64,000 bases of DNA from Rhodosorus marinus CCMP1338 (lineage: Eukaryota > Plantae > Rhodophyta). A program made the translations under genes and the position numbers. The DNA lies in NCBI GenBank assembly GCA_029953675.1, contig JAMWBK010000012.1:62001-126000 (forward strand). The letters run 5' to 3'. The notes below the pieces were generated by a model that did not search any database, had not been told where the DNA came from, and was given only the letters and a program-made list of their open reading frames with translations. Numbering within the stretch: position 1 is the first letter of the stretch; each line of letters starts with the position of its first letter. Of the stretch, positions 2,837 to 42,034 are shown piece by piece.

Positions 2837-4218
2837 CTTGAGATACAAGAGAGTAGACCCGATCAGGACGGTCCACGGCCCACGTCCACGGTCCGGTGCA
2901 TACCCAAAAATAGATGTGAACCAATCTATTTTTAGTGTTAGTAAGTCGCAAACGAGATAGATGTTTTTGGGTGGGTCAAATGCGGTGCGTTCCACGGGAA
3001 AAGAGAAAACAGGAGCTTTCTTGTTGGAACTGGAAAACCTCCGCATTCGGTTCTTCGGTACATGCAGCTAGACGAAGTCCTCCTTTGACAAGAACTTCCT
3101 CAAACCATTAACCTTCTTAGTTCACGGAGCTCCCAGACGGTGAGCTGGGCTCATAACCTGTTGGAACTGGAAGTTTTTACTTGAGCTATAGAGACCCATG
3201 AAGGCGCGTACACAGTCGCCTTTTACTCGAGCAACCCCTCTGATCACGGAGAGAGTGGCTAGAATATTATGTACCGTACATTCGTGCTAGGTATAGGAGT
3301 CGCTGGTTCTAATTTAAGTCATTAGCCCGATGTTGTTGTATGAACGAGAACGAATGGGGTATTGGGAGGGACCAGAGTGAGGGATGATGAATGAACTTCG
3401 AAACAAATAACTTCGAAACAAATACCTGCGTTTTAGTGCAGCGAGTTATCTCCATCGCCTTATTCGCTCATATTTTGCGTGCTTCTTTAAGATCATTTGC
3501 CCGATTGGGTATTTAGATATTTTCCGATATGAAGACCGAGAAAACATTTACGGAGAACTCCATGAATTATATACACATAGAAATTTCAACCATTATTATC
3601 GTTTATTCAATAGCATCAGACGACGACTCAGTATACCAAAAAAAATAACTGGCTGCGAAAATCCGCCAAAGTGCATGTTCTTAAAACATTATATAAAAAG
3701 GCGCATTTTTTGCCTGTGAAATTTATCTTCGAATTTTCATGTCAAGCATAGAAAGACATTTCAAAACATGAGGAATAGGAACACTATCATTTTCTTTTAG
3801 ATGTTGAGAGGAAAGTGGAAACCGCGGAGGGTCAGAGGAGTGAGTGTACGGGGGAAGTCTGAGGGGTCTTTGGGGGAGTGGGTGGGGGTCCGGGGAGTGT
3901 CAACCAGTATCTCAGCCGGCGGAGTGGCGGGCCGTCGTGTTGGGGATCTGTTGCGTTGGTTGAGAGGGCGTTGAAGGTGAGTGAATTCTTTAGATCGTGC
4001 TTTGGGTAGATTCGGGAGCGGCGGTGGAGTGCGGTCGTATAAATGGCTTTCTTTCAGTGGGCTTTGTGAAGTGGCGGAGGGAGGAGATATTCTAGAGTCA
4101 GGGATATATAACGTGACTTGGTTGCAAGGGGAAGACGAGTGTTTTGGGATGATGGAGCAAGGAGTGATAGTCCTTCGAGGAAGGCCTGCGGAGTGGGTGA
4201 AGTTGTTTTTTTTTGAGG

Positions 4219-4884
4219 ATGAAGAAGACTGTTGGATATGGCTTGTTCTATTTGGGTGGTTCGCCGCACTGGGCCCGGGAGAGGCCTTTGAGGGAAAGCC
4301 AAACGTGATTCTGATAGTGCTTGACGATCTTGGTTATCATGACCTCGGCATCCAAGGGAGTGAGGACGTCAAGTCCCCCAACATTGACAAACTGGCGACA
4401 GATGGGGTTAGATTCACCGATGGATTCGCTCCCAATCATTTTTGTGGACCTTCGCGGTCTGGTCTCTTCTCGGGTACTTATCCCTTCAGGATCGGCGCCG
4501 CATTCAATACACCGAAGGACTACTGCGACAAAACAGTTGGACTACCGGTGGACGTGGAGATATTACCAAAGACGATGAAGAAGGCAGGCTACAGGACTTA
4601 CTGCGTCGGAAAGTGGCATTTGGGCCATACGACAGATCATCACCCGAAAAACCGTGGATTCGACGGGTTCTTCGGGTTTCTCGGCGACAGTTGGAACTAT
4701 ACGCTCTCTGAGATGTACGACGAGGAGCTTGACGATTTGACATGTACAGGGGATTCCAGCGAGTTGCAGGCACTACCTACGCCACCGATGATTTTACGGA
4801 CGCCGCTATCTCGTATATATCGAAATCGAGGAGGCTTGAGGAACCTTTCTTCCTTTACCTAGCGTATAACGCTTCGCATACTCC
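4219..4884 (+). pseudogene. Truncated, frameshifted duplicate of the sulfatase at 32413-34095
   Basis: Near-identical N-terminal half (KPNVILIVLDDLG, CGPSRSGLFSG, GKWHLG). ATG at 4219 is out of frame by one missing T; a second deletion frameshift lies near 4737; the copy is cut off by a retroelement at about 4890. Confidence 0.9.
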
Positions 4885-4889
4885 TAGAT

Positions 4890-7551
4890 ACGAAGCGCGG
4901 TTGCCCAGGAGGCGACAGTCGCAGGCGAGCATACAAGCCGACGGTCCGCGACGCCAAATCCCCCTAAGCGCAACGGTAGGACGATCTGGGCACGAATTAA
5001 GTCCCTGTCTGGAGCAGATTCAAGATCCAGGGGTTCATCCAAGACCGTTCCCCGGTGTTTCAGCATCATATCGTCGGCCTTAGGGCGAACCAGTAGTTGA
5101 GCCGGGGACCGGCGCACAAGCGGGAAAGCAAGCATGCAGATTGCAGCATGCTGTCTGGTAGGCGTTCAATGGCGTCAGTAAGCTGTTTTTTCGTTGCGAA
5201 GACCCGTTCGCAAGAGTCTTGAACAAAATTGGCACTCCCCAAACCGATGCCATGGTGCTGGAGCCCGTCACGTATGCCGAAGGGTCGGAGACTAGAGGGC
5301 AATGAGTCCATCGCAACTTCGCTCGGGGCGAGAAAACGGCACTTCGTAGGTTCGACGATCAGACCTACTTCACGGGCAATCGCTTATTTTGGTCAATCGC
5401 CGAGCCAGGGTCTCAGGTGTGCCCAACAATGTTACGTCCTCGTGGTAGGCGCAGATACAAAGATCCAGCACCTCGGTCGCAAGACGCAGGAGAAAAAGCT
5501 GAAAGGCACAGGCGTGAAGGATAGGCCCGCAAGGATCGCCTTGTTGCACTCCAGCATGCGCTTCAAAAACAGTGCCCTTTGTTGTCCAGTAGGGGAGGCC
5601 CCCCCCTCCGTAAATACCAAATAGGAAAGGCAAAGCCTCCGGGAATACCCTTCGAATCACCTCTAGAGCATACGTCGGCGAAACGCTGTTGAGTGCATTG
5701 CGGAAATGCACCACCAAAACTCCTTAGTCCACCCGCTGGCTCGCTCCAGCCGGATCGCATGGGTGATCAATTCGCAACCCCCGGAAAATCCCACCCCTAC
5801 TTGCAACGGCGTTAAAAGCTGTGACCCGCTGGCGGAGGCGCTGGCATATCCACCTCCCGGCTAACTTCCTGAGGCTCTCGAACATACCGATCGGCCGGGG
5901 ACTCGGGTGTGCCGGCTGGTGGTCGGGTTTCGTTAGCAAGCAAAGCTGTGCCGGCCGGAGGCATCCCACGAACCCAGCTGCTGTAGTTTTGCCTTGTAAC
6001 GCGACGCCGGCACAAGCCGCCTTTCCCTATCGAAGAAGTTGGCGGCCGCGTGCAGGTGACGTATGCCTGACCGGAAGCGCTCCAACAAGATCCTCTCAAT
6101 GCGCTGAATGCGCAGCCGATGGATGGCTGCCACCTTTGCGCGCCAAGCTCAGGAAGATGAGGTCGAGAATGGCCCCAGCCATTGAGAGTTCTCCTCGAGG
6201 TAGTACGAGAAGAGGGATCCTGCCCCGGAGGGGTAGGGAGCCGCCTTCCTAAGAATTCCATCGTCCGAGCCAACTCCGAAAACGCGTCCTCCATATGCCC
6301 CAGTCTCCGCCCTCTTTCAGGACGTAGGCATGCAGGTCCATTGGCTGCGATCTCGCAGCCAAACAAGAGGAATTAATCGTCTTTCTCCCTCTTAGACCCG
6401 GGGGATTCGGTCCTAACGCGCTGGCTGCATGGCTGCCCTAAAGTTGTCAGACGTCCACTCCGCGAGGATCGCAGTGAGTTGCCTTCGGGATTCGACGAAT
6501 CGATTGGGATTCTCTCGAGGGACATGCCTTCCAGCGCTCCAGTCTCGCCACTCTCATTGGAACTGGTACTAGGGGCAGATCCCTCCAACGCCCCCAGCCG
6601 CTGTAGCTCTACCTTGTGGCTCGAGGACACCACAAGACGCCTCTCCGGATCAAAGAAGGTGGAAACTGCTGTGCGCAGGTGATGCGTACCTGACCTAAAA
6701 CGTTCCAACAAAATTCTCTCTATGCGATGAATGCGCAGCCAATGGATGACTGCCGCCTTCACGTTGCTCTCCGGCTCCGAGAGCCCTCCAGTCTCCCCCG
6801 GGGACAGAAATTGCCCCGAGAAACGGTCGAACGCGAAATGCAGGCCGCCCTGGGGGTGAGAATGTAACCACCGGGCGCTCTCAGGCCACTGTTCGGTGTC
6901 TTGGCCAGTAAGGCCTGGAGGTACGTGGCCGCGTTCGCTGTGACCAGGAAAAGAACGTCCCGACCCTCGTAGTTGGCAAAGATAAAGTCTTCCCGATTAC
7001 AGCCCAAGTATTCCGCAAAAACGTTAAAACGTTGCGGAAATCGCGCATGTTCGGCACCTCACCCGGGTTGTCCGCGGCGGAACGTTCCGCACCCGGACAT
7101 ATTGCAAAGTAGTTTCCGTGGTTCCAACCTTAGGCTCGCTATGATGGAAATACCGTATCATTGCCGCCATACGGGCGGCAGTGGTACCTCTCCACAGCGC
7201 CGAAATGTATGATGGCCCCGCCTTGGGGCGATCACTTACGCCAGCCTGGGCCCGAGGTTGTTGACCCGCGGGGGCCTGCCGAGGACCCGGAAGTCCGCTC
7301 CAGATGAGGGGGGTGCTAAGCCTGGAGGCACCGCTTCATTCGCCGCCAAACCGGTTGCCTCACAATCACCACCGCCTTTGCGTCCAGTCCCCGAGCGCTG
7401 AACTCGTTTTAGCCCCGCATTCCACTCCCCAACGCCGCACTGTCCCACACAGGGCCCGCCGCCCTCGCCTGTCCCGGGACAGGTTCATCTCGACTGACCG
7501 ACAGATTTTGACTGCCTTCAGAGACAGTTGCCACTCTGGGATTCAAACTGG
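4890..7551 (-). mobile_element. Older family A subfamily copy (A'), 3' segment: ORF1 C-half and ORF2 RT region, degenerate
   Basis: Fragments homologous to family A ORF1 (KAAVIHWLRIHR) and RT (FRNALNSVS, QQGDPCGP, CAYHED); multiple frameshifts; RLE end missing. Confidence 0.9.
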
Positions 7552-7627
7552 GCTTTACTGGGCTTTGCTGGGCTTTAATGGACTTTACTAGCATAGCCTG
7601 AAGCGCTACGCAAGGCGTGAAGATGAA

Positions 7628-10600
7628 CTAATAACTAGGGAGGGAAGCATGCAACCCCAGGCGCCGATGGCGCGCCTCGGAAAGCATGTGGCTGGAATAT
7701 CGCCAAAGGGAGACACTTAAACGCCTCAAGAGCGCCAAATATTCAGTAGCATGCTCAGCAAAACATTTCCGCAACCACTCTAAACCCGACTTATCCACGT
7801 GACCAAAGCTTTCCACAATGAATGGCTGGAACCGGTGAGAGCGACCCTCAGCGCAAGGCAGACTGGCCATGCTCTCAGCATACCGTCGTTCCTTAACTCT
7901 TCGAAGGGCTGAAGCCGCGGCCCCCCGGCGGCGGGCGGCTGCGGTGAGGTGGGCGCTGGCCACGGGGCAGGTAATCGCAAGGTCCACATATGTTGAGCGT
8001 CTGGCAGCAGCGTCAGAGACGAGGAGATCGGCTATACAACGGGGCGGTGCAGAGTCCGAGATTGATCTGGGCACTTCCGACTCAACCTCAACCGTATGCC
8101 CTATCCGAGTCAAAACTTCGCTGAGGATGTACTTGAGGCGAGTGTGACGCCTCGTACGGAGACCTCGCAACATTCCGCAGGAACCCAGGAAGTGGTAGCC
8201 ACAAGCGTCAATCCGGCTCTCACATCCCTGACAGAAAGACGGCCGATTAGAGTGCCACGGAGCCTGTGGCAAACCGAGATAGATCCGTGCGGCAGAACGG
8301 AACTGGAAAGCATCGAGACGATGACTCAATGACGACGGTAGAGTGGTTAACCACAAGTGCGAGAGGTGGCCTCCCATGCCGCGGAGACGAGCGGCAGTGG
8401 TAGGCGGCGTGAGAGGAGAATTGAGCATGACTGTGTGAGCGGCACTGTGTTGGCCCCAGGTGAGGCTATGTTGAATCACATCAGTGCGGGAGCTCCACAA
8501 TCGGCTCAAACCCGGATAGTCTGCAACAGGGGACCCGGGGCTAGCCTCTCCGTCATCGGCAAGAACTCGGTCGAGGGGAGAATCCTCAATCGCTTCAGCT
8601 CGTCCCCATAACAGCTCCCTCCAGGAACGAAAGTGGGACCGATTTGCGTCCGGCACGGCGTTGCACCTCCTGAACGCGTGTTGAAGACCATCATAAATTG
8701 TCAAAAGCGGGGGCGGCAGGCTCACTGGATCCTCGTCGGTCAAAGCTCGAGCCAAGAGGCAGGCACTTCGCATCCGGAAGGTCACCAACGTTCGCAGCGC
8801 GGTAGCCCAGGAGGCAACCGCCGCTGGCGAGCATACCAGCCCACGGTCTGCGACGCCGAATCCCCCTAATCGCAACGGTAGAGCGATCTGTGCACGAATA
8901 AAGTCCCTGTCGGGAGCAGCTTCAAGATCGAGGGGCTCATCCAAGAGCGTTCCCCAGTGTTGCAGGGTCATCTCGTCGGCTTTAGCCGCGATCCACGAGC
9001 CCCAAGCTGGAAGCAGGCTGCGCAACCAGTAGTTGAGTCTGGGACCGGCACAAAAGCGGGAAAGCAAGCAGGCCGATTGCAGCATGCTGTCGGGTAGGTG
9101 CTCAATGGCGTCGGTGAGTTGCTTGTGCCGTGCCAAAACTCGCTCGCAGGATGCTTGGACAAAGTTGTCAGTCCCCAATCCGACGCCGTGGTGTTCGAAC
9201 CCTTCACGTTCGCTGATTAGTCGCAGAGTGGGTGGCAGAGAGTTCAGCGACACGTCCCTCGGGGGGGGAGAAAGCGACATTTTTCTGTTTCCACAGTCAA
9301 ACCGACGCGACGTGCAATCGCTTCGATCGCGGTCAGTCCCCTAGCCAGGGTGTCAGGGGTGCCCAGCAATGTTACGTCATCGTGGTACGCGCAGATTCGA
9401 AGATCCGAGACCTCAGTCGAAAGACGCGTAAGTACGAGCTGTAGGGCACAGGCATGAAGAAGAGGTCCGCAAGGGTCGCCTTGTTGGACGCCAGTATGTG
9501 CTTGAAAAACAGTGCCCTCCGTTGTCAAGTAGGGGAGGCTCTCCCCTCCGTAAATACCCGATAGAAACGGCCACGCCTCCGGAAACACACGTCGGAGCAC
9601 CTCTAGCGCATGCGTCCGCGACACGCTGTTGAATGCGTTCCGGAAATCAACCACCAAGACTCCCCACTCCGGCCTACTGGCGCGTTCTAGCTCGATCCCA
9701 TGGGTGATCAGTTCGCAACCCCCAGAAAATCCCACCCCTACTTGCAAGGGCGCCATAAAAGCTGTGACGCGCTGGCGAAGGCGCTGGCATAGCCACCTCC
9801 CGGCTAACTTCCGTAGGCTCTCCACCATCCCGATCGGCCGGAGACGCGGGTGGGCCGGCTGGTGGTCAGGTTTCGTGAGCAAGCAAAGCTGTGCCTGCCG
9901 GAGATGTTCCCATGGCGCGGACGCACCCGATACGCCCTGGAACAACTTTTTAAGGATCCTCAGAAGCGCGCTCTGGCCAGGCTGGCTCAGGGCCTGCAAT
10001 AGCTCTGTTCTTAGTCCGGAGGGTCCAGGACAGCGTCCCCGACGCGAGGTACGAAGCAAATCCTCCAGGTCAGACTCACTGAGCGTCAGATCGATGCGAA
10101 ACCTGGCCAATTCCGGACGGTCCAAGAATACCTCGAATTCAGGGGACAAATCCACGTCGGACTCAGGGAACAAAGACGACACCGTCTGGGCGAGACTATC
10201 ATCGTAGGGGAGGACAGGCGCCTGGCCCTCCAAAACCCGCGCCGCTCGACTTAAATCGCCCACTGCTACCAATTTCTGTACTCGAGCTGGCACGGGCGAC
10301 ACTGTGCCATGCCGAGTCCGACGGGCGGATGGTGCTGACGACGCCAAATAGCTGCGCTGTAGTACTTCGAAGTCTCCCTTCAAGAACAGGGCCAGTCGGT
10401 CTCGTACTCGCCATCTGCGCTCCGATGTGTGAATGGGGGCCAGAATCAGGCGCGGCATGACCCCCAGAAAAACCCAAATGACTGTGTCCCGAATGTTGCG
10501 AGCCAGGCTCGTGAAGATGAAATCGAGAATGGTTCCAGCTACTAGAAGGTCTCCACGAGGAAGGACGACTGGGGGAATGCCCCCACGGAGGGGAAGCGAG

Positions 10601-10701
10601 CCTCCTTCCAAAGAAATCCACCGCCGGAGCCAACTCCGAAAACGCGTACGCCAAATGCCCCAGTCTCCGCCCTCCTTCAGGACATAAGACTGTAGATCCA
10701 T
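7628..10701 (-). pseudogene. Family A ORF2 (RT, CCHC-type motif, PD-(D/E)xK endonuclease), one frameshift near 9265
   Basis: DFRNAFN, QQGDPCGP, YHDD; CQGC..DACGYHFLGSC, RTRRH, ADL..VDLAIT..KE, FQPFIVESFG. The break is in a G homopolymer. Confidence 0.9.
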
Positions 10702-10732
10702 AGGCTGCGACCTCGCAGCCGTGCCTGGAGCG

Positions 10733-12140
10733 CTAATCGTGCTTCTCCCCTTAGACCCGGGGAGTCGGTCCTCGCTCTCTTACCTCCTATCCGCACCAAA
10801 GTCGTGAGCCTCCCACTCCGCGAGGCTCGCGGAACGGATCCCGCGGGCTTCAGCAAAGTAACCTGGGCGTCCTCCACCGCCATGCCCTCAGTCTGCTCCC
10901 CTGCCTCACCACTCTCGCTGGAAGTAGTGCTGGAAGCGGAGCCCTCCAAAATCCCCACCCGCTGCAGCTCTGTCTTGTAGCGCGAAGTCAGCACAAGTCG
11001 CCTCTCCAGATCGAAGAAACTGGAAACCGCCATGCGCAGGTGACGAGGGCCCGACCGGAACCGCGCCAACAAGATCCTCTCAAGGCGCTGAATCCGTAGC
11101 CAATGGATCGCTGCCGCCTTCACGCTGCTCTCATGCTCAGAGAGCCCTGCCGTTTCTCCCGGAGACAGGAAATTGCCCGAGAAACGGTCAAAATCGAAGT
11201 GCAAAACCACCTGCGGGTTGCAGCGCAGCCACCGGGCGCTCTCAGGCCACTGCTCGGTAGGCTTCGCCAGCAAGGCCTCCAGGTACTTGGCGGCGGTTGC
11301 GGAGACCAAAAACAGCACATCGCGGCCCTCATAGTTTGCGAAGAAGAAATCACCCCGGCTGCACCCTAACGATTCCGCAAAAGTGTCCCGGAAGTCTCGC
11401 ATAGACGGAACCTGTCCTCGTGTAGTCTGGGGCCGGACATTTCGCACCCACAGAAATTGGAGAGTGGTCTCCACAGGTCCATCCTGAGGCTCGCGAGATT
11501 GTATGAAACGGAGCATAGCCGCCGTACGTGTGGCAGTGGTGCCCTTCCGCAAGACTGATGCGTACGAAGCGCCCCCCTTGCGGCCACCACGTGCCCCCGA
11601 AGTAGCCGGGAGCTGGTGACGACCTGAGGGCTGGTCCAAGAGAGGGAAGTCCACAGCTGCAGTCTCCTCCACACCGGTTGCCGCACATTCACCACCACCA
11701 TTGCCTCGAGTCCCCGAGCGCTGAAGCGCGTTTTGGCCCGGCCTGCCGCTCCCCAACGTCGTACTGTCCCGCGCAGAAGCAACAGCCCTCGCCTGTCCCG
11801 GGACAGGTTCATGTTGATTGATCGGATGTTGACTGCCTTCAGCCAACGCTGCCACTCTGGGGCAATTCAAATTCTCGTCCGAATTTGAATTTGACCTGGC
11901 CAGCAATCCCGATTCCAGCCCACCTAGCTTCTGGGTGAGCTGAGGGAGCACTCCACGATCACTCGCAGCCGTGATCAGGCTGGTGACAGCGGAGATAAGT
12001 GAACGCGCCTGGGTGCCAGAAGCGCCTTCCAAGTCAACCTCGGAAGAAAACGTGCCGCAGCTGAGGCGAACACGGAGTCCCCCACCTGGCAGTGCCTCCT
12101 TGGGAGGAGGCTCCGTCGAGTGCGGAGATATCCCTACCAT
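10733..12140 (-). CDS. Family A ORF1 protein (C-terminal 1-nt deletion causes read-through to 10677)
   Basis: Colinear with the intact ORF1 at 42035-43444; conserved ATG in MVGISP. Confidence 0.75.
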
Positions 12141-12369
12141 CCTGAGGGAATCCGCCAAGGAAACGTTGCACCACCAATATGAAACCGCACCGAGAGAATA
12201 ATCGACCAAACCCAACCCAAATAGGAAAGGCCCCGCAACTCACCCACCCGGAAGACAGAAGTAGTTGCAAATGCAAACGACGCCCCGCGGAAAATCGAGG
12301 GGAAGGCGTACCAGAGGAAGCGCTTCCCGTAAACGAACACGCTCGCGACCGAAAAAGAAACGCTTTAAT

Positions 12370-13030
12370 AGCATAGCCTGAAGCGCTACGCAGGGCGTCA
12401 AAAGAAACTAAGAACTAGGGAGGGAAGCGTGCAAACCCAGGCGCCGATGGCGCGTCTCGGCAAGCATGCTGCTAGAATACCGCCACAGGGCAGCACTCAA
12501 ACGCCGTAAAAGCGCCAAGTACTCAGTAGGATGCTCAGCGAAACATTTTTTTCCGCAACCACTCTAAACCCGATTTATTCACATCACCAAAGCTTTCCAC
12601 AATGAAGGGCTGGAACCGGTGGGAGAGACCCTCGGCGTAGGGCTTACTGGCCATGCTCTCAGCATACCGTCGTTCCTTCACTCGTCGAAGAGCCGAAGCG
12701 GCTGCCCCTCGGCGGCGGGCGGCAGCCGTGAGATGGGCGCTGGTCACAGGGCATGTAATCGCGAGGTCAACATATGCTGAGCGTCGGGCGGCAGGGTCTG
12801 ATACAAGAAGACCTGCGATACAGCGGGGCGGCGCCGTGTCCGAGACCGGTCTGGGTAGTTCCGATTCCACCTCAACCGTATGCCCTACCCGAGTTAAACA
12901 AAAGGCAGAAATAAAGTAGTGCGTGTGGGGTTCGAACCCACGCGGACTACTTTATTCCAAAGGAGTGGTAGCCACAAGCGTCAATCCGTTCTCTCACATC
13001 CCTGACAGAAAGACGGCCGATTAGAGCCTA
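12370..13030 (-). mobile_element. 5'-truncated family A variant (A''), RLE 3' end; the rest of its tail lies at 7552-7579
   Basis: Homologous to the ORF2 C-terminus and 3'UTR. Its tail ATTAAAGCCC-AGCAAAGCCC-AGTAAAGCCC is split by the 7580-12361 copy. Confidence 0.85.
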
Positions 13031-13535
13031 CTACCCGGGTTTGAATTTCCCCGCGAAACCAGTCCCGATTCCAGCGAACCGAGTCGCTGGGTTAGCTGGG
13101 GTAGCACGCCTCGATCACCCGCAGCAGTGATCAGGCTGGTGACAGCTGAAATAAGTGCACGCACCTGGGTGCCAGAAGCACCACCAAGCCAACCTCTGAA
13201 GAGAAGGTGCCGCAGCTGAGGCGAACAACTGAGTCCACCACCTGTCCGTGCCTCCTTGTTATGAGGCTCCGTCAAGCTCGGAGATACCCCTACCATCCTG
13301 AGAGGATGTTCAAAGGAAACGTTGCACTACCAAAATAAAACCTCACCGAGAGAAGAGTTGACCACACCCAACCCAAAAAGGGAAAGCCCCTCAACACACC
13401 CCCACGAGAGAGAGAAAAATTTTGCAGTTGCAAGCGACACACCCCGGAAAAGCGGAGGAAGGACTACCAGAGGAAGAGCTTCCCAAAAACACGCACGCTC
13501 ACGACCGAAAAAGATTCAAAACCCCACCTCTCAAC
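13030..13535 (-). mobile_element. A' copy, 5' segment (5'UTR and ORF1 N-terminus); continues at 7551
   Basis: MVGVSP...GASGTQVRALISAVTSLITAA...LESGL is colinear with ORF1; joining the flanks restores the family A spacing. Confidence 0.85.
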
Positions 13536-14112: not shown

Positions 14113-15207
14113 CTAAGAGATCGAAAGGCAGTTCAGGCAGGCCATGGCGACGCCGGAATCTTGGACTGAGTCTAGGTTATAGACGGCCTGAGACTTCTGA
14201 CGGGGGCATCCGGATCCATTCTTGAGGGTGAACCTTGTCATCGACATGTTGGACCTGATAAACAGGTAGCCGTTGATGACGATGGGCTGGGTGCCTGGGG
14301 ACATCTCGATTCGGACATCGCTGCAGAACTTATTGGCCGGGTAAATGGTCTGGTCGAAGCTTCGCATTCTTCCCGCTTTCTTCGCTGAGCCGTGGATGTA
14401 CATGTAGAAACTCTTCTGGTCGGGAGTCATGGTCATCCGGAGAAAGTCGAAGCCCTTGGGGGTTTTCCGGTTGACTTCCTCCAGAGTGTTTGGGTTCAAC
14501 TGGAGGAGGTAGGATGGACCGTTGCCTGTCGCCGTCAGGAAGAGATCGCTGCTTCCGGCGATCAGGAGGTGAGAGTACTGTCCACGAACTATGGAGAAAT
14601 TGACGACCTCCCACGTGTTCCGGCTGTACTGGACCAGCAACCCCTTGCTGAAATCGTGATCAAGCTGCGGGCTGATGACGTAGGCGACGTAGAGGTACCT
14701 GGCGGTCATCGCAGACTCTGCGATATCCTTGATGAAGATGTCCTTGATAACGGGTTTCGAAATTGCCTTGATCAGTTTCAGCGTCGCAGGATTCACCACC
14801 ATGACCGATTCTGTCTCCAGGCACGTCAGAGCCAGCACCGTCTGGTCGCTGTAATCGTAGCTTGCTGTCAACGCGATCGGCTGGATGCACTGAGTTCCGA
14901 ACGATTTCGATTGCACAAACTCAAGCTTGTTCGTTCTGGACTGAATTTCATACATCCGAAGCTCGGCATGTAACTCTTCGTCGTTATTCACGGACGTCAC
15001 GTAGATATATCTCCCCAGCGAAATGAGCTGGAATAGCCTATTTCCACTCTTGTCCTCAATAATATGGACCGTCTCCAACGTCTCCGCATCATTGAGCTGG
15101 ATTAGGTTCTGACGCTTCCCAGTGATGGCCACCACATTCGCATTCAAAGCGACGCACACATGCAGTGCCACCATCAAAACGCATCCAAACAGTATTGTTT
15201 TCTCCAT
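14113..15207 (-). CDS. Secreted beta-propeller-like protein, 364 aa, unknown function
   Basis: Hydrophobic signal peptide, beta-strand-rich repeats, intronless; clear paralog of 20837-21910. The fold is inferred. Confidence 0.75.
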   Translation of the reverse strand: MEKTILFGCVLMVALHVCVALNANVVAITGKRQNLIQLNDAETLETVHIIEDKSGNRLFQLISLGRYIYVTSVNNDEELHAELRMYEIQSRTNKLEFVQSKSFGTQCIQPIALTASYDYSDQTVLALTCLETESVMVVNPATLKLIKAISKPVIKDIFIKDIAESAMTARYLYVAYVISPQLDHDFSKGLLVQYSRNTWEVVNFSIVRGQYSHLLIAGSSDLFLTATGNGPSYLLQLNPNTLEEVNRKTPKGFDFLRMTMTPDQKSFYMYIHGSAKKAGRMRSFDQTIYPANKFCSDVRIEMSPGTQPIVINGYLFIRSNMSMTRFTLKNGSGCPRQKSQAVYNLDSVQDSGVAMACLNCLSIS

Positions 15208-15270
15208 TTTCGGTTTCTTTTTCTTTGTTCTTATTTATCCTCTACTTGGACTTTACTAGCATCCTCTACT

Positions 15271-17638
15271 GGACTGGACTTTACTAGCATAGCCTGAAGC
15301 GCTACGCAAGGCGTGAAGACTAACTAATAACTAGGGAGGGAAGCATGCAACCCCAGGCGCCGATGGCGCGCCTCGGAAAGCATGTCGCTGGAATATCGCC
15401 AAAGGGAGACACTTAAACGCCTCAAGAGCGCCAAATATTCAGTAGCATGCTCAGCAAAACATTTCCGCAACCACTCTAAACCCGACTTATCCACGTGACC
15501 AAAGCTTTCCACAATGAATGGCTGGAACCGGTGAGAGCGACCCTCAGCGCAAGGCAGACTGGCCATGCTCTCAGCATACCGTCGTTCCTTAACTCTTCGA
15601 AGGGCTGAAGCCGCGGCCCCCCGGCGGCGGGCGGCTGCGGTGAGGTGGGCGCTGGCCACGGGGCAGGTAATCGCAAGGTCCACATATGTTGAGCGTCTGG
15701 CAGCAGCGTCGGAGACGAGGAGATCGGCTATACAACGGGGCGGTACAGAGTCCGAGATTGATCTGGGCAGTTCCGACTCAACCTCAACCGTATGCCCTAT
15801 CCGAGTCAAAAATTCGCTGAGGATGTACTTGAGGCGAGTGTGACGCCTCGTACGGAGACCTCGCAACATTCCGCAGGAACCCAGGAAGTGGTAGCCACAA
15901 GCGTCAATCCGGCTCTCACATCCCTGACAGAAAGACGGCCGATTAGAGTGCCACGGAGCCTGTGGCAAACCGAGATAGATCCGTGCGGCAGAACGGAACT
16001 GGAAAGCATCGAGACGATGACTCAATGACGACGGTAGAGTGGTTAACCACAAGTGCGAGAGGTGGCCTCCCGTGCCGCGGAGACGAGCGGCAGTGGTAGG
16101 CGGCGTGAGAGGAGAATTGAGCATGACTGTGTGAGCGGCACTGTGTTGGCCCCAGGCGAGGCTCTGTTGAATCACATCAGTGCGGGAGCTCCACAATCGG
16201 CTCAAACCCGGATAGTCTGCAACAGGTGACCCGGGGCTAGCCTCTCCGTCATCGGCAAGAACTCGGTCGAGGGGAGAATCCTCAATCGCTTCAGTTCGTC
16301 CCCATAACAGCTCCCTCCAGGAACGAAAGCGGGACCGATTTGCGTCCGGCACGGCGTTGCACCTCCTGAACGCGTGTTGAAGACCATCATAAATTGTCAA
16401 AAGCGGGGGCGGCAGGCTCACTGGATCCTCGTTGGTCAAAGCTCGAGCCAAGAGGCAGGCACTTCGCATCTGGAAGGTCACCAACATTCGCAGCGCGGTA
16501 GCCCACGAGGCAACCACCGCTGGCGAGCATACCAGCCCACGGTCTGCGACGCCGAATCCCCCTAATCGCAACGGTAGAGCGATCTGTCTACGAATCAAGT
16601 CCCTGTCGGGAGCAGCTTCAAGATCGAGGGGCTCATCCAAGAGCGTTCCCCAGTGTTGCAGGGTCATCTCGTCGGCTTTAGCCGCGATCCACGAGCCCCA
16701 AGCTGGAAGCAGGCTGCGCAACCAGTAGTTGAGTCTGGGACCGGCACAAAAGCGGGAAAGCAAGCAGGTCGATTGCAGCATGCTGTCGGGTAGGTGCTCA
16801 ATGGCGTCGGTGAGTTGCTTGTGCCGTGCCAAAACTCGCTCGCAGGATGCTTGGACAAAGTTGTCAGTCCCCAATCCGACGCCGTGGTGTTCGAACCCTG
16901 CACGTTCGCTGATTAGTCGCAGAGTGGGTGGCAGAGAGGCCAGCGACACGTCCCTCGGGGGGAGAAAGCGACATTTTTCTGTTTCCACAGTCAAACCGAC
17001 GCGACGTGCAATCGCTTCGATCTCGGTCAGCCCCCTGGCCAGGGTGTCAGGGGTGCCCAGCAATGTTACGTCATCGTGGTACGCGCAGATTCGAAGACCC
17101 GAGACCTCAGTCGAAAGACGTAAAAGGACGAGCTGTAGGGCACAGGCATGAAAAAGAGGTCCGCAAGGGTCGCCTTGTTGGACGCCAGTATGTGCTTGAA
17201 AAACAGTGCCCTCCGTTGTCAAGTAGGGGAGGCTCTCCCCTCCGTAAATACCCGATAGAAACGGCCACGCCTCCGGAAACACACGTCGGAGCACCTCTAG
17301 CGCATGCGTCCGCGACACGCTGTTGAATGCGTTCCGGAAATCAACCACCAAGACTCCCCACTCCGGCCTACTGGCGCGTTCTAGCTCGATCCCATGGGTG
17401 AACAGTTCGCAACCCCCAGAAAATCCCACCCCTACTTGCAAGGGCGCCATGAAAGCTGTGACTCGCTAGCGAAGGCGCTGGCATAGCCATCTCCCGGCTA
17501 ACTTCCGTAGGCTCTCCACCATCCCGATCGGCCGGAGACGCGGGTGGGCCGGCTGGTGGTCAGGTTTCGTGAGCAAGCAAAGCTGTGCCTGCCGGAGATG
17601 TTCCCATGGCGCAGACGCACCCGATACGCCCTGGAACA
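15271..17638 (-). mobile_element. Family A, 5'-truncated young copy (RT to RLE open from 17450 to 15324)
   Basis: Near-identical to the other young copies; tail GGACTGGACTTTACTAG at the left end. Confidence 0.95.
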
Positions 17639-17649
17639 ACTAGCATAGC

Positions 17650-17730
17650 ACTGGGAAGCGCTTTATCAGCATAAGCCTAAAGCGCAACGCAAACCGTGAA
17701 AAGGAACTAAGAACTAGGTAGGGAAGCCCG
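17650..17730 (-). mobile_element. Family A variant 3'UTR remnant
   Basis: Minus strand reads CCTAGTTCTTAGTTCCTTTTCACGGTTTGCG...GCTGATAAAG. Confidence 0.7.
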
Positions 17731-19866
17731 TTTAGCTTGCAGACCTTACCATTGTCTTGTGTGCCCGGGGGTCTCTCCATGTACATCTCCTCATCGAGTT
17801 TGCCATTGAGGTAGGCCGTCGATACGTCCATTTCCTGCACGTCGTAGATACTTTGTGTTGCCGATGATAGCAGCACTCTGATGATGTCGAAACTGACCGT
17901 CGGTGAGTAAACTTCTGCAAATTCTTGCTGCTGGAAACCAGCTGGAAACCTCTTGCGACCAGCCGTGCTTTGAATTTCAGCGGCTCCCCGCTCTTGTTCC
18001 GTTTCAGTTTGAAAACGAACTTGTTGCTTAACAGTTGCTTATTCTTTGGTCCGTCCAACAGTGACCAGGTCTGGCACGTGCTCAGATTTTCGAGCTCGTC
18101 CGCAATTGCTTCCTCCGAATACTTCCCGTTGGGTCCAGCAAGGGCTTCCCCGATCGTTTGAGGTTCCGATTATCGTTAAGCTGTTCAACTTGGATTTCGC
18201 TATTGCGCCTGCCCTTACTTGTCGTGTGGGATTATTAGCTCTCAGTGGCTCATGACCGTACCAGCCTTTCCGCCACTCACACTGTCGGATTTCGAAGTGC
18301 GTACTTCACTGCGCTTATACCTCGGCTTACATCAGCCCCCTTGGCCGTACGAGATGGGTTCGTCGTGCCCTCTCTGCTCTCAGACTGAAGACAACGCAGA
18401 TTTTGGCGCCCACCTGCTCGCTAGTTGCCCGGCGGTGAAAGGTGCTCGAACCCGCCGCCATACACGGATCTTGAACCTGTTATACCGGGAACTTCGGCCT
18501 GTAGTCCGGCAAGCCGGTCTGGAAATCGAACGTGAGAAACCTTTACCCGTCGCGGACTTTCAAAATGATGAACGCCGTGTAGCCGACCTGGTGATCACCT
18601 GTGATGACATCCGCCGTACCACATACGTTGATCTTGCTGTTCCTAACCCTCAAGCAAGCGTTATCTCCCGGCTGCGGGGGAGCGCCGTGGATCTGCCGCC
18701 GCCAGCATGAGACGCCGCAAAGAGATCAAATACGCGGGGGCTTTGTCTTCCCCTGGTGTTCGTGCTTCGGCACTAGCACATCGCTTGGTACCCCTGATCA
18801 TTGAGTGCTTTGGGTTCATGGACTCTGTTGGTTCTCGCTGGCTTCGGGAGTTGTTCCGCGAACGCCCTGACCGTCTTCAATCGTTGTTTACCCGCTTAAG
18901 TTTCCTGCTGTGGCGCATGAATGCCGCTTTGATGTTGGAGGCGCGAGTTCTTCGCCGCGCTTAGTCTTTTTTTCCCCTCGGGGTTTTTTCTTTCAGCCTC
19001 CGATTAAACCATTCGTTCGTACTTGTCGCGGTAATTTTGTGACTTCTTTGACTTCTTTCGCTGTTAGCTCGTTATTTTCACGTTCTTCGGTGCTGTTGTC
19101 AGGTTTCACATCCTCAGTATGGGATCTGTGGTGGGTTTTGTGAACTGGTGTTTCCAGTTCGTCTTCGAGGCTCGATGGGGCCTGATTCCGACTGATGTAG
19201 TCTTTCGCTTTGGCGTAGTCGATGGCTTTTTGAATGTCCGGTGTAAGTGCGGCTTAGGGTTTCTTCAGAGGGAACGAAAAGCCACTACGATGGCTTTTCG
19301 TCCATCTTTTGCGACCATCTCCGAGTTGGATCATGTGTTGCCGCTTCGCTCACAGCGGAGTATATTCCCGCACGTCGTTGGTACGTCGAGCGTGTCGCGT
19401 CGTATGGTACCATCTTCCTTTGGTGCGTGGGCGATCGCTAGGGAGCCGAACTGGGACATTTTTTTTGAAGTCGTCTTGCTTGCCTGTGAGTATTTCCCAG
19501 GGGCTTTTGTTGTTGCTTCGTCTGGGCCTTCCGTTCAGTATCCTTTCGATAATTTGTAGGGTCTCCGTCCAGGGGCTTTATTCTATGCCTGACTGGTACA
19601 AGGATACCCGCATTAGCATTAGGATGCTCCGATTGGCTCGCTCCGAGATCTCGTTCGTTTCCGCGCTGTATGGGGGCGTCGTGTCCAGCGTGATCCCTAG
19701 CTTCTTGAGTTTCCCTTGCACGCCAACGTGTTCGCCTCCTCCGTCGGAATGGTTTGTAATTATTCTTTGACCCGATAAACGCTCGAAATACGCCACATAG
19801 TCATCGAATATCTAAGAGACATCGTTTTTTCTTTGTATCGAGTGTATATCTGTAAATCTCGATACT
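17730..19866 (-). mobile_element. Ty1/Copia LTR-retrotransposon remnant (integrase then RT), interrupted by family B at 18225-19019
   Basis: Integrase HSDGGGE..TPPYSAETNEISERANR; RT KFVFKLK..KFKARLVARGF and QEMDVSTAYLNGKLDEEMYM. Integrase-before-RT order is Copia-type. Confidence 0.9.
18225..19019 (+). mobile_element. Family B, 5'-truncated copy with 9-bp TSD
   Basis: CPLC..HLLASC, RTRRH, VADLVIT..YVDLAVP, IECFG; tail ATTCGTTCG; TSD TACTTGTCG at 18216-18224 and 19020-19028. Confidence 0.9.
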
Positions 19867-19873
19867 GATAAAA

Positions 19874-20270
19874 CGAACGAACGAATGGTTTAATCGGAGG
19901 CTGAAAAAAAAACCCCGAGGGGAAAAAAAGACTAAGCGCGGCGAAGTACTCGCGCCTCCAACATCAAAGCGGCATTCATGCGCCACAGCAGGAAACTTAA
20001 GCGGGTAAACAACGATTGAAGACGGTCAGGGCGTTCGCGGAACAACTCCCGAAGCCAGCGAGAACCAACAGAGTCCATGAACCCAAAGCACTCAATGATC
20101 AGGGGTACCAAGCGATGTGCTAGTGCCGAAGCACGAACACCAGGGGAAGACAAAGCCCCCGCGTATTTGATCTCTTTGCGGCGTCTCATGCTGGCGGCGG
20201 CAGACCCACGGCGCTCCCCCGCAGCCGGGAGATAACGCTTGCTTGAGGGTTAGGAACAGCAAGATCAACG
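19874..20270 (-). mobile_element. Family B, short 3' copy
   Basis: Near-identical to 18630-19019; probable TSD GATAAAA (19867-19873 and 20271-20277). Confidence 0.9.
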
Positions 20271-20547
20271 GATAAAAAGGGTAAGAAGTCTAAAAAGTCT
20301 AAAAAGGATAGAAAGCGTAAAAAGGGTAGAAAGCGTAAAAAGCGTAATAACGTAGAAAGCGTAAAAAGGTTAAAAACGTTAAAAATTGTAAAAAGGGTAA
20401 AAAGTGGAAAAAGTGGAAAAAGTGGAAAAAGTGTAGAAAGCGTAAAAAGAAGAAAAAGCACAAAAAGCGTAAAAAGCGTGAAAAGGGTAGAAAGCGTAAA
20501 AAGGATAAAAAGGGTACAAAGCGTAAAAAGGGTAAAAGGGGTAAAAT
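20271..20547. repeat. Degenerate 9-bp tandem array, consensus GTAAAAAG(C/G), about 30 units
   Basis: Direct reading of the sequence. Confidence 0.9.
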
Positions 20548-22425: not shown

Positions 22426-23094
22426 TGAGTTTATTCGGTAGTAAAGTCCAGTCCACTTTATTCGGAGACTGAAAAAAAAAAACCCAACCCCAGAAAAAAA
22501 ATACTCGTTCAACAAACGCTAACTGCCAGCTGATTCCTTCAACACCGCCCACCCCTCCAAAGCCGCTCTTCTCTTCTCAAAGGTATTTTGATTGAGTATA
22601 TTTATTTGGAGGGGCTGAAAAAAGAAAAACGGACAATACGAGAAAGACCATTGGATTTCCTCATTTGGGCTTATTCAACTCATCTTAGTTCCTGCTAAAT
22701 AATTTTTAGGCTATACGCTATTTCTTCTTTTTTTTAGCCCTAAGTCCACCCGGTACGTAATATAGGGTTTTTGCCGACTGGGTCGGGTTTATCCTTATTT
22801 ACCCCTATAAACCCACCCTGTTTTCACAGGTTTAAGCACTTCTGGGTCGTAAACGGTGAAAAACCCAACTCACTTGGGACAACCCTAATAATACCATCCA
22901 AGTGGCGCGTGAATGGGAGGGGTGGTAAAGCGTGATTGTTTGTTTACTTTATTAGGGTCTGGTTGTTTTCTATTTTTGGCAATGAATCAGGAGCGTTCGG
23001 AGGCTGGGAGGCCAAACGATGAACTCTATTGGCCGGTATTATTGGTCATGTATTTCAGCAATTCCCAAAAAGGGGATTGAGCTATTGCTCAAAA

Positions 23095-23835
23095 TTGAAT
23101 GAACTTGTTTAGTCAGAGACTGAAGGAAAAAAACCCCGAGGGGAGAACAAAGACTAAGCGCGACGAAGATATCGCGCCTCCAACATCAAAGCAGCGTTCA
23201 TACGCCACAGCAAGAAACTTAAACGGGTAAACAACGAGGACAGACAGTCAGGGCGTTCGCGGAACAATTCCCGAAGCCAACGAGAATCCACGGAATCCAT
23301 AAACCCAAAGCACTCAATGACCAGAGGTGCCAGGCGATGAGCTAGAGCCGAAGCACGAATCCCTGCGGAAGATAAAGCCCCCACATATTGCAACTCTTTG
23401 CGACGTCTCATACTGGCAGCGCAGAATCCACGTTGCTCTCGCCACAAGCTCAAATTACTGCCGACTTCTTAGCTTGACCTGCCGTCCCAAGTTTGAGTGG
23501 ACGAAGTGAGTAATGGGAATACTAAATCGGGTAAACTGAATGACTGAATTTGTCTAACTGGAGACTGAAAAAAGAAATCCCGAGGGGACTCGCGCGGCGG
23601 GATCGCCGCCTCCAACATCAAAGCTGCGTTCATACGCCACAGCGAGAAACTTAAGCGGGTAAACACGAAGACAGACGGTCAGGGCGTTCGCGGAACAACC
23701 TCCGAAGGCAACGAGAACCAACGGTATCCATAAACCGAAAGCACTCAATGACCAGAGGTACGTACCAGGCGATGAGCTAAGGCCGAAGCACGAATTTCTG
23801 GGAAGACAAGGCCCCTGCATATTTCACCTCCTTGC
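23095..23835 (-). mobile_element. Two tandem family B 3' fragments (about 23095-23480 and 23537-23835)
   Basis: Each has the B tail, the 3'UTR and LWRMNAALMLEA. Confidence 0.85.
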
Positions 23836-23959
23836 GACGTCTCATATACTGACAGTCGCGTAAAGTAAGGTTGTCACTTCCGTCCGGTTGCGTACGATTA
23901 GTAATCGAAGAGTCCGATAAACGTTTACCGAACCTGCATTTCTTAACAATAGAGTGCAT

Positions 23960-28642: not shown

Positions 28643-28760
28643 TGAGCAGCATGCTTGCCGAGGCGCGCCATCGGCGCCTGGGTTTGCACGCTTCCCTACC
28701 TAGTTCTTAGTTCCTTTTAACGGTTTGCATAGCGCTGTAGGCTATACGCTAATAAAGCCA
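28643..28760 (+). mobile_element. Family A variant 3' fragment
   Basis: MLAEARHRRLGLHASLPS* followed by the 3'UTR and GCTAATAAAGCC. Confidence 0.85.
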
Positions 28761-28770
28761 CATTCATTCA

Positions 28771-29058
28771 ATGTGCGGGGGTTTTGTCTTCCCCAGGCAT
28801 TCGTGCTTCGGCTCTTCCCCTATACCTCTGGTCATTGAGTGCTTTGGGTTTATGGATTCCGATGGTTCTCGTTGGCTTCGGGAATTGCTCCGCGAACCCC
28901 CTGACCGTGTGTCCTCGTTGTTTACCTGTTCAAGGTTGTTGCTGCGGCGTATGAATCCTGTTTTGATGTTGGAGGCGCACGATCTTCGCCGCGGATAGTC
29001 TTTTTTTTACCCTCGGGTTTTTTTCTTTCAGTCTCCGATTGAACAAATTCATTCATTC
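28771..29058 (+). mobile_element. Family B 3' fragment
   Basis: PLVIECFGFMDS; (ATTC)n tail. Confidence 0.85.
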
Positions 29059-29105
29059 AATACCCGCCATCACCTCTCGGACTTAATAGGATATTATACA
29101 GAGTC

Positions 29106-30724: not shown

Positions 30725-30974
30725 TTTTTGCGGCATGCGGCCAAAACGCGCATTTGCATTTTCTTAAAAGACTGCGTGAAATTTTTTTTGCCTATTTTTG
30801 CGCACTTACGTTTCTCGAGACGACACGATTTCTGTTCAGATATTTATTGGCCGGTACGACTTTGCGCTGTTTGCGTAGTTGGAAGGACCGGCAGAATAGC
30901 GTAGCTAGAGTCGTATATCCGGTGCATAGATAGTATACTGTAGATTGTAAGTAGAATCATTTACGGCGTCAAAG

Positions 30975-31345
30975 TGAATGAATGGTTTAATCGGAGGCTG
31001 AAAAAAAAACCCCCGAGGGGAAAAAAAGACTAAGCGCGGCGAAGTACTCGCGCCGCCAACATCAAAGCGGCATTCATGCGCCACAGCAGGAAACTTAAGC
31101 GGGTAAACAACGATTGAAGACGGTCAGGGCGTTCGCGGAACAACTCCCGAAGCCAGCGAGAACCAACAGAGTCCATGAACCCAAAGCACTATCAGGGGTA
31201 CCAAGCGATGTGCTAGTGCCGAAGCACGAACACCAGGGGAAGACAAAGCCCCCGCGTATTTGATCTCTTTGCGGCGTCTCATGCTGGCGGCGGCAGATCC
31301 ACGGCGCTCCCCCGCAGCCGCGAGATAACGACTAGCTTGAGGGTT
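30975..31345 (-). mobile_element. Family B short 3' copy
   Basis: Near-identical to 19874-20270. Confidence 0.9.
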
Positions 31346-34404: not shown

Positions 34405-34885
34405 TTTTAATCGGAGACTGAAAAAAAAATCCCAGAGGGGAAAAAAGAGACTAAGCGCGTCGAAGGTCGCGCGCCTCCAGCATCGAACGAATGGTTTAAT
34501 CGGAGGCTGAAAAAAAAACCCCGAGGGGAAAAAAAGACTAAGCGCGGCGAAGTACTCGCGCCTCCAACATCAAAGCGGCATTCATGCGCCACAGCAGGAA
34601 ACTTAAGCGGGTAAACAACGATTGAAGACGGTCAGGGCGTTCGCGGAACAACTCCCGAAGCCAGCGAGAACCAACAGAGTCCATGAACCCAAAGCAGCAT
34701 CAAAGCAGCGTTCAAACGCCACAGCAAGAAAATTAAACGAGCAAACAACGAAGTCAGACGGTCGGGGCGTTCGCGGAATAATTGCGGAAGCCACGAGAAC
34801 CAACGGAATCCAGAAACCTAAAGCACTAGATGCTTTAGGTTTCTGGATTCCGTTGTCCAGAGGTACGAGGCGATGAGCTAGAGAA
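34405..34885 (-). mobile_element. Older family B copy with a young B copy (34485-34694) nested in it
   Basis: TSD CAGCATC at 34478-34484 and 34695-34701. Confidence 0.85.
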
Positions 34886-38825: not shown

Positions 38826-38932
38826 TTGCTGTACTGCTTTTTACTGGCTTTACTCGCCTACGCTGCTTTTTACTGGACTTCACTGGACTTTACTAGCATA
38901 GCCTGAAGCGCTACGCAAGGCGTGAAGATGAA

Positions 38933-41900: not shown

Positions 41901-42003
41901 AGCCTCCTTCCAAAGAAATCCACCGCCGGAGCCAACTCCGAAAACGCGTACGCCAAATGCCCCAGTCTCCGCCCTCCTTCAGGACATAAGACTGTAGATC
42001 CAT
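38933..42003 (-). pseudogene. Family A ORF2 (about 1023 aa if repaired), single 1-nt deletion near 41537
   Basis: ccctccaaacccgc here versus ccctccaaaacccgc in the other copies. Confidence 0.9.
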
Positions 42004-42034
42004 AGGCTGCGACCTCGCAGCCGTGCCTGGAGCG

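Follow-up and report, generated by a model that had tools for sequence, protein, structure and literature searches.

Family Y is a 4.8-kb retrotransposon family of the non-LTR type (lacking long terminal repeats, LTRs) of the red alga Rhodosorus marinus that has two open reading frames (ORFs) and encodes a restriction-like endonuclease (RLE). It was analysed in a 64,000-nt stretch of strain CCMP1338 (contig JAMWBK010000012.1, positions 62,001 to 126,000 of the forward strand; hereafter the window) and in extra loci (L122 to L125) that were reached via neighbouring sulfatase genes. Y probably integrates by target-primed reverse transcription (TPRT) via its C-terminal RLE and favours the 3' ends of resident copies, by which it would build head-to-tail stacks. 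It is part of a wider superfamily, every member of which has the 3' end ...GCGCTTCAGGCTATGCT and, after it, tail units with the pattern A(A/G/T)TAAA(G/A)(C/T)C.

Insertions into the tails of resident copies

Copy A, a young member of the family, occupies positions 7580-12361 on the minus strand (4782 bp) and is abutted at both ends by an 8-bp duplication. Its sense strand starts with GTTTCTTTTTCGG (window position 12361) and ends with ...GCGTAGCGCTTCAGGCTATGCT, the body end being GCTATGCT, plus one tail unit AGTAAAGTCC (7580-7589); its identity to the other long Y copies is 97.7-99.4%. The downstream copy of the duplication (7572-7579, minus strand; plus-strand GCTTTAAT, sense ATTAAAGC) is the first unit of a resident tail, and the upstream copy (12362-12369, minus strand; GCTTTAAT) directly follows the body end GCTATGCT of the resident element, A2. 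On the minus strand ATTAAAGC occurs only twice in the window, both times as a flank of A. A2 is an older, internally deleted relative (12370-13514, minus strand; 81% identical to Y), and its decamer tail (7547-7579, minus strand; three units, ATTAAAGCCC AGCAAAGCCC AGTAAAGCCC) was cut off from its body by the insertion of A; excising A with one copy of the duplication rebuilds an A2 that ends in GCTATGCT ATTAAAGCCC AGCAAAGCCC AGTAAAGCCC. The chance of an exact 8-10-bp match at fixed flanking positions is 1.5e-5 to 1e-6 per event. A preliminary description of this DNA had stated that the copy at 7580-12361 is flanked by a duplication belonging to the decamer tail of an older relative, and the presence of GCTTTAAT at both flanks, with the left copy in the A2 tail, confirms this. 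Its term "full-length" needs correcting, as ORF2 of A is split by indels and a leader (at least 15 nt, up to ~48 nt in copy J) is missing. A further correction is that these elements all lie on the minus strand.

Two further insertions are nested in an older tail. The older copies G (43967-44138, 82% identical) and H (44139-44264, 73%) are joined head to tail on the minus strand (43967-44264), and the remainder of the G tail lies at 38826-38874. Copy F, a ~374-bp 3' fragment of family Y (43583-43956, minus strand), was inserted at the body/tail boundary of G with a 10-bp duplication (plus strand GCTTTTTACT, sense AGTAAAAAGC; 38865-38874 and 43957-43966). Copy E (38885-43585, minus strand; ~4.7 kb, 5'-truncated by 80 nt) sits in the single tail unit of F, with a 9-bp duplication, AGTGAAGTC, at 38876-38884 and 43583-43591; this word is found only there on that strand. 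The tail unit of F has a G that is absent from every other tail of the family, and because of this private G and the confinement of AGTGAAGTC to the flanks of E, two serial insertions are indicated and not one composite. The single insertion at 38877-43956 of the preliminary description thus resolves into two, F in the G tail and E in the F tail, while the GCTTTTTACT duplication in an older tail stands; the extra GG noted beside GCTTTTTACT is a coincidence, belonging on one side to a tail unit and on the other to the end of a body. The further tail-to-head junctions reported near 37035, 38825 and 62610 are all present.

The fourth young tail insertion of the window is copy B (15276-17641, minus strand), a 5'-truncated Y copy with a 1.5-unit tail (AGTAAAGTCC AGTCC). 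Its 5' end comes after the GCTATGCT(AG) of an 18-nt fragment (17642-17659), which in turn comes after the tail GATAAAGC of a ~75-nt fragment (17660-17735). No duplication was found for B or for the entire B chain, the flanks of which are a copia fragment (upstream) and a gene leader (downstream).

The junctions of every Y-type 3' end were mapped. For A, F, E and B the first-strand nick lies exactly at GCTATGCY|A(N)T, that is, at the body/tail boundary of the resident copy, just after GCTATGCT or GCTATGCC. Targeting of relatives' tails is therefore upheld in a narrower form than first proposed, the hits being confined to the boundary and the first unit and not spread over the tail. Duplications measure 8-10 bp in A, F and E, and none is verifiable for B. 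The tail kept between successive copies is mostly 7-10 nt long (~15 junctions, young and old), which equals one unit and the duplication length; a nick at the body/tail boundary accounts for this spacing of about one tail unit. Every insertion into a tail has the orientation of its resident (0.5^15 = 3e-5), and copies I and J, which lie in bodies, are oppositely oriented to theirs.

Such precision could also come from a protein, either the endonuclease or another DNA-binding part, that reads the 3' end of the element (GCTATGCT plus AnTAAAG) in the manner of R2, in which case pairing between the RNA and the tail would be irrelevant. This explanation is thought somewhat unlikely. It agrees with the use of the first unit after GCTATGCY in four of four window tail insertions, although A2 and G offered three to five units, and with the sequence specificity of most RLE elements (PMC4640811). 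The sites of insertions outside tails speak against it: upstream they share nothing with GCTATGCT, and their common features are only A-N-T and an A-rich downstream stretch, the part that would pair. Old Y-like copies that begin right after the unrelated GGGGTTA end of another family, T, at two independent loci are likewise hard to reconcile with it, and so is a slippage product at the 3' end. The 1.5-unit tail AGTAAAGTCC AGTCC is present in four copies. Within the decamer, AGT occupies positions 1-3 and again 6-8; a shift of the nascent ...ACT-3' from the second to the first triplet yields exactly such a tail, which suggests realignment on AGU.

Tail units (e.g. at 7547-7589 and 62593-62601) begin with AATAAA, AGTAAA or ATTAAA, the most frequent polyadenylation-signal hexamers of animals, but poly(A) tracts are missing from all copies; the unit might also serve as a 3'-end processing signal.

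Insertions outside tails and enrichment

Five young insertions in the window lie outside tails. Copy I (54700-56055, minus strand; 5'-truncated) sits in the body of an older relative of opposite orientation, with the duplication ACTTAAAAG at 54691-54699 and 56056-56064. Copy J (57615-62443, minus strand) is full length and has in addition a 48-nt 5' leader ending in GAGGATTGGGGTTTT; its target, CCA|AGTATTC, lies in the body of the older, oppositely oriented copy R, and the duplication is at most 2 bp. The 3' part and tail of R (AATAAAGCC AGCC AGTAAAACC ...) are found at 62444-62630 (plus strand), followed by 5'-end-like sequence, and the rest of R at 56863-57607. The remaining three are abortive mini-copies of 13-26 nt: a copy of 13-14 nt (GCT AGTAAAGTCC A; 15247-15260, minus strand) with the 10-bp duplication AGTAGAGGAT at 15237-15246 and 15261-15270; a tail-only insertion (T AGTAAAGTCC AGTCC; 22439-22454, plus strand) at a non-tail site, with an 11-bp duplication A(G/C)TTTATTCGG containing one mismatch; and a 24-nt insertion (GGCTATGCT AGTAAAGTCC AGTCC; 45906-45929, plus strand) in otherwise unique DNA, with the short duplication ACAA. 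On their strand, ACTTAAAAG and AGTAGAGGAT occur only at the two flanks of each copy. On the sense strand, the first nick is placed immediately 5' of an A(G/T/C)T triplet and the second nick 7-12 nt downstream, which produces the duplications; 11 of the 12 mapped targets start with A-G-T, A-T-T or A-C-T, the exception being the mini-copy at 45906-45929, the target of which starts with ACAA.

The leader ending in GAGGATTGGGGTTTT is common to J (62396-62443) and to the full-length copy of locus L123 (L123 3351-3376), where it can form a short hairpin (CCAATCC...GGATTGG), and is missing from A, which makes it uncertain where the family truly starts at its 5' end.

Tails, drawn generously, total 368 bp and account for 0.57% of the window; their share of the element-derived DNA is 1.2% and that of the AGT sites 2.1%. 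Seven young events had been identified when the tests were made, and these seven entered them; two non-tail mini-copies came later and made nine. With four of seven events in tails, the excess is significant against uniform placement (P=3.8e-8) and against AGT sites (P=7e-6), the latter being the comparison named beforehand in the preliminary description, and four of the six young insertions that landed in element DNA hit tails (P=3e-7 against their 1.2% share). Rough hand arithmetic for four of nine against AGT sites gives ~3e-5; with the extra loci included (the trio of Y copies at L125 counted once, as non-tail) the count becomes 6/11 (P=4e-8). The excess is weaker against A(G/T/C)T(A/G)AA sites (6.5e-3) and absent against AGTAAAG sites (P=0.83), because two thirds of the AGTAAAG sites are tails. 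The preference is thus fully describable as one for a 6-7-nt tail-like motif, and tail targeting is a preference, not a rule.

Coding capacity and classification

ORF1 of copy A (10677-12215, minus strand) comprises 512 codons from the listed TTG start and overlaps the start of ORF2 by 25 nt; no recognisable domain was found in it by Pfam search. ORF2 of copy A (7628-10701, minus strand) is split into 9244-10701 (N-terminus and reverse transcriptase) and 7628-9280 (linker, CCHC motif and RLE) by two inserted bases in a stretch of C near 9265. In the majority consensus of the Y copies ORF1 is open and ORF2 forms one ORF of 1023 codons, the stop codon of which lies only ~40 nt before the body end. 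The 12 Y copies compared (window and three other loci) differ by 0.4-3%, and the family was recently active. Eight of the 11 indels among them fall in homopolymer runs and may be long-read errors.

ORF2 matches Pfam RVT_1 (1.8e-15 and 2.6e-16). Compared with solved structures, a single ORF2 sequence matched R2 proteins best, with a weak second alignment across the CCHC motif and the nuclease, whereas a profile of 11 family members matched the R2 reverse transcriptase at 4.7e-27 and the R2 endonuclease region 989-1152 at E=3e-09, an alignment that takes in the columns CCHC, RH, E, PD, DV and K. Matches of ORF2 of LINE-1 (a long interspersed nuclear element, LINE) to the family profile were restricted to the reverse transcriptase. 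The C-terminal motif in the window copy reads CQGCESRIDACGYHFLGSC, then RRH...E...ADLLV...VDLAI...K (CCHC and PD-(D/E)xK), and its columns C, D, H, H, E, D, D and K are nearly invariant (>=90%) across the 11 relatives. An apurinic/apyrimidinic (AP) endonuclease of the Exo_endo_phos family was not matched in ORF1 or in the N-terminus of ORF2, even at E up to 1; a motif scan of ORF1 and ORF2 found no C2H2 zinc finger, and no N-terminal zinc-finger or Myb motif was present. The earlier identification as an RLE retrotransposon is borne out by the RVT_1 match, the R2-like profile matches of both domains and the lack of an AP endonuclease match. The copies also have the structure of the RLE group, with no terminal repeats, variable 5' truncation, a fixed 3' end and target-site duplications: copies from 13 nt to 4.8 kb share one 3' end, and the duplications measure 4-12 bp apart from that of J.

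Hallmarks of the CRE clade (CRE1/2, SLACS, CZAR) are a single ORF, one or more N-terminal C2H2 fingers and insertion into spliced-leader genes; MoTeR and Cnl1 are usually placed near this clade. Y differs in all three respects, with two ORFs, no C2H2 motif, and element tails and A-N-T sites as targets; the kinship with the CRE clade implied in the preliminary description found no support. It also lacks the traits of the R2 clade (28S rDNA site, N-terminal zinc finger and Myb), as there is no rRNA gene in the window and no finger motif in the proteins. Database relatives from the single-sequence and profile searches are unnamed ORFs of at most 38% identity, including red algae, one spinach record and metagenomes; a clade assignment via the names of homologues was dropped, since both searches gave solely unnamed proteins. 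The spinach profile match (P0148), which ranks among the better ones, comes from a 189-Mb record of Spinacia oleracea and is labelled "uncharacterized protein"; in a flowering plant a LINE of the RLE type would be unusual, and contamination is possible.

No tail-targeted arrays were evident in the distant relatives, as the copies at L126 and L127 are solitary and the L001 contig ends at the tail. In L001 (a metagenome contig, 34% identity) positions 4638-4676 hold a 3' untranslated region of ~39 nt ending in AATAAACCACC where the contig stops. The solitary relative at L127 12446-12700 has a long (TGTAT)n-like tail, and its contig, which also carries immunoglobulin-domain genes, is presumably from an animal. 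A metagenome scan with the 17-mer GCGCTTCAGGCTATGCT gave at least 120 matching stretches on contigs with environmental-type names; these were taken as chance matches, the pattern being too short.

Arrays and their origin

On their 1.16-Mb contig, the window covers the region ~62-126 kb from one end, and L122 that 39-60 kb from the opposite end; the L125 array is on another contig, 1.03 Mb inside 3.8 Mb. Locus L123, 10-13 kb upstream of the window, holds nine head-to-tail copies, L125 three Y copies in a row and L122 a solitary Y copy with the 12-bp duplication AGTTGTGCTCAT. About 20 of 30 3' ends have another co-oriented copy within 22 nt. The picture is that of a self-targeting array: A entered A2, F entered G and E entered F, every insert having a separate duplication, and chains of nine (L123) and three (L125) copies occur.

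Tandem copies could instead have been co-inserted in single events, the reverse transcriptase reaching the often truncated 5' end of a first RNA and jumping from there to the 3' end of another, so that tails would never have been targeted. For the R2 reverse transcriptase it is established that it can jump between templates end to end in vitro, and the L125 trio (113, 1354 and 3445 bp) is bounded as a group by one 12-bp duplication, AGTAAAACCATC, has identical 2-unit tails and shows a difference of only 0.4% between its second and third copies (c2 and c3). As a general account of the arrays, template jumping is nevertheless judged improbable. A, F and E have separate duplications, each consisting of a rare tail variant that is present only at the two sides of the copy concerned; the upstream partners A2, G and H are degenerate, internally deleted and 73-82% identical, whereas the inserts are 98-99% identical to one another; and neighbouring copies differ from one another.

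Recombination (unequal crossing-over, segmental duplication, gene conversion) has clearly acted as well. In L123 the block of copies 1 to 3 (450+81+31 bp) recurs as copies 4 to 6, a clear tandem duplication; inverted, 99%-identical fragments of another RLE family, S, flank 19035-19868; element X and a sulfatase paralogue each have a break at 4884/4891; and Cnl1 arrays are reported to grow and shrink in this way (bioRxiv 10.1101/2021.08.11.455996). That recombination made the arrays, and that the tail bias merely mirrors survival in junk DNA, is very improbable. Such survival cannot yield the exact GCTATGCY|A(N)T placement, the strict co-orientation or distinct 5' truncations with individual duplications, and it leaves the excess of tail hits within element-derived DNA (four of six, as given above) without a cause.

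Mechanism of integration

In the TPRT reading favoured here, the nicked bottom strand (...CTTTACT-3') would pair with the AGUAAAGUCC repeat at the 3' end of the RNA, and a closer match would raise the odds of successful priming and completion. Resident tails, as the best genomic matches, would be hit repeatedly; poorly matching AGT sites would be nicked too and would frequently give only abortive copies of 13-26 nt. That bottom-strand pairing with the RNA tail determines where priming succeeds is inferred from the boundary nick, the A-N-T targets and the AGTCC slip tails, which together point there. Each insertion would deposit a new body/tail boundary, so that landing sites multiply with the array, and tandem duplication and deletion would reshape the arrays further. 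The self-propagating arrays of the preliminary description are retained to this extent: a further tail comes with every insertion, which allows arrays to propagate, but tandem duplication and possible template jumps also contribute. In a stronger version the RNA, and not the protein, would pick the site, the end of the transcript (body end and decamer tail, perhaps with read-through into the next tail) pairing with resident DNA and thereby setting the nick at the body/tail boundary; this is regarded as doubtful.

Several observations weigh against TPRT into resident tails as the source of the stacks. Protein recognition of the DNA body end GCTATGCT would equally put the nick at the boundary, and for the L125 trio one event with template jumps is as good a fit as serial insertion. 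Five of the nine young window events lie outside tails, one of them in unique DNA. The sample is small (~130 kb of a 31-Mb genome) and was chosen as repeat-rich; tails were counted after the insertions, and the window was selected for the very feature tested. No single intact Y copy is present in the sample. A conserved 3' RNA structure was rejected (RNAalifold consensus -4.4 kcal/mol, 6 pairs, zero compensatory changes), and an Rfam search of the whole window found no known RNA family or 5' ribozyme at the gathering score or at E up to 1.

Comparison with known elements

Cnl1 and Zepp are earlier examples of elements that build nested arrays by self-targeting, and Y behaves likewise. Cnl1 of Cryptococcus neoformans and C. 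deneoformans resembles Y in having copies from 25 bp to full length with duplications of 1-12 bp or none, in entering genes at times and in having arrays altered by recombination (bioRxiv 10.1101/2021.08.11.455996). It differs in its subtelomeric arrays on nearly every chromosome and its G+C-rich targets, as opposed to the decamer-tail boundary at A-N-T, the L125 array deep inside a contig and the red-algal host of Y; the likeness meant here is one of behaviour. For Zepp, an L1-type LINE, Higashiyama and colleagues reportedly described in 1997 that new copies enter the tail of earlier ones. Like Y, Zepp forms clusters of nested 5'-truncated copies, in Chlorella vulgaris and Coccomyxa subellipsoidea (PMC3446292); unlike Y, with its RLE and 10-nt unit tail without poly(A), it has an AP endonuclease, a poly(A) tail and one cluster per chromosome.

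MoTeR1/2 of Magnaporthe oryzae share with Y an RLE domain, an own copy of the target repeat and multi-copy arrays (bioRxiv 10.1101/845669; PMC1635262), but their telomere-like repeats are at the 5' end and their target is made by telomerase, whereas the target of Y is made by the element and lies at the 3' end. R2 is the best solved-structure match (reverse transcriptase and CCHC/PD-(D/E)xK) and likewise combines TPRT and precise 3' junctions with variable 5' ends; in contrast to Y it targets 28S rDNA and has one ORF and an N-terminal zinc finger/Myb region. The targets of most RLE elements are repeats, among them microsatellites and other transposons (PMC4640811). R4/Dong, HERO, Togen and Utopia (NeSL clade) resemble Y in that they target repeats or microsatellites and have a tail repeat resembling the target, but those targets exist independently of the element. 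The target of Y is created by the element family, and target number therefore rises with copy number.

Genomic neighbourhood

X (4891-7546, minus strand; 72-79% identical) is an older relative truncated at both ends; its 5' side adjoins the A2 tail and its 3' side a truncated sulfatase paralogue. This paralogue (3411-4884) is 88.7% identical to 31608-33083 (intact gene 32386-34095) and ends where X begins. As paralogue and X both stop short at 4884/4891, one or more gene copies have been lost at the array edge. The expectation that the arrays spare host genes found no support, given this truncation and the abortive copy in unique DNA. At five of five loci examined, fragments of RLE elements start ~20-850 bp downstream of the stop codon of a sulfatase paralogue.

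Other older copies of the Y type in the window include D (37040-37234, minus strand; 3' end at 37085-37234, plus tail), with a tail-to-head junction to the next copy near 37035-37040, and a 5'-truncated copy (63212-64000, plus strand; 82.6% identical) that starts right after the end (...AATAAAGGCTACGGGGTTA) of a family T copy at 62764-63211. The RLE family T (24546-~27500, minus strand; 62764-63211, plus strand; L123 ~5040-5130) has ~27% identity to Y and ends in ...GCCCAATAAAGGCTACGGGGTTA. A 5'-truncated old Y-like copy directly follows its GGGGTTA end at 63212 and at L123 ~5040.

Family S, also of the RLE type, has 31-43% amino acid identity to Y over aligned ORF2 stretches. Its fragments are mostly 3' pieces of ~300-450 bp ending in ...CCGATTAAACAAATTCATTCATTCA with an (ATTC)n-like tail; in the window they lie at 2376-2839, 18584-19034, 19869-20273, 23092-23440, 23537-23846, 28770-29059, 30961-31348, 34482-34828 and 53217-53654, and a full-length copy lies at ~L122 4628-8719. 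One S copy begins 19 nt after a Y-like body end (28751-28769), and another is preceded by the tail-like units AGTAAGTCC GGTAAAGCC AGCC (53655-53690). The S 3' fragments at 18623-19020 (plus strand) and 19877-20273 (minus strand) are 99% identical and inverted around 834 bp of unique sequence (19035-19868), an arrangement that suggests an inverted duplication more than two separate insertions. A minisatellite (20273-20546) of ~30 nine-base units GTAAAAAGN (plus strand) adjoins an S fragment at its 5'-truncated end. It was considered as an expanded tail, its unit resembling the older unit of G, AGTAAAAAGC, and was set aside, as it is on the opposite strand and has no element body attached.

The B chain stops ~40 nt before the ATG of the ORF at 14113-15207 (minus strand), directly downstream; this ORF is intact, with 364 codons, a signal-peptide-like start and no Pfam match. 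An exact-protein look-up of the window ORFs 14113-15207 and 7628-9280 gave no record of either, and the protein database lacks the ORFs of the element. On its other side, the fragment chain leading into B breaks a Ty1/copia-type reverse transcriptase fragment (17771-18094, minus strand; Pfam RVT_2, 4.1e-08).

Implications

The genome of Rhodosorus marinus comprises 31.2 Mb in 17 contigs with 15% repeats, and in the main text of the genome paper the word retrotransposon is absent and no LINE families are described (PMC10250338). What is new here is the family and its red-algal lineage, which are undescribed in the literature searched; an RLE family and two companion families are now documented in that lineage. 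Distinctive are the 10-nt unit tail without poly(A), the nucleotide-precise use of the boundary, the two ORFs and the junctions with two other RLE families. To a specialist the result is tidy more than surprising, the general behaviour being known.

The copies form a natural record in which nick position, duplication length, AGT microhomology, tail slippage and abortive products of 13-26 nt are legible in the sequence. RLE elements are under development for site-specific gene insertion (PMC11371274), and a target defined by a 10-nt tail offers a simple system in which to ask what share of specificity RNA-DNA pairing has. If the choice of site were RNA-guided, Y would be a naturally RNA-guided self-homing LINE with a landing site that is reprogrammable via the tail. 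For the alga itself, the arrays mark rearranged regions, such as that of the broken sulfatase paralogue, and under RNA-guided choice three RLE families using each other's 3' ends would build a dedicated chromosomal compartment.

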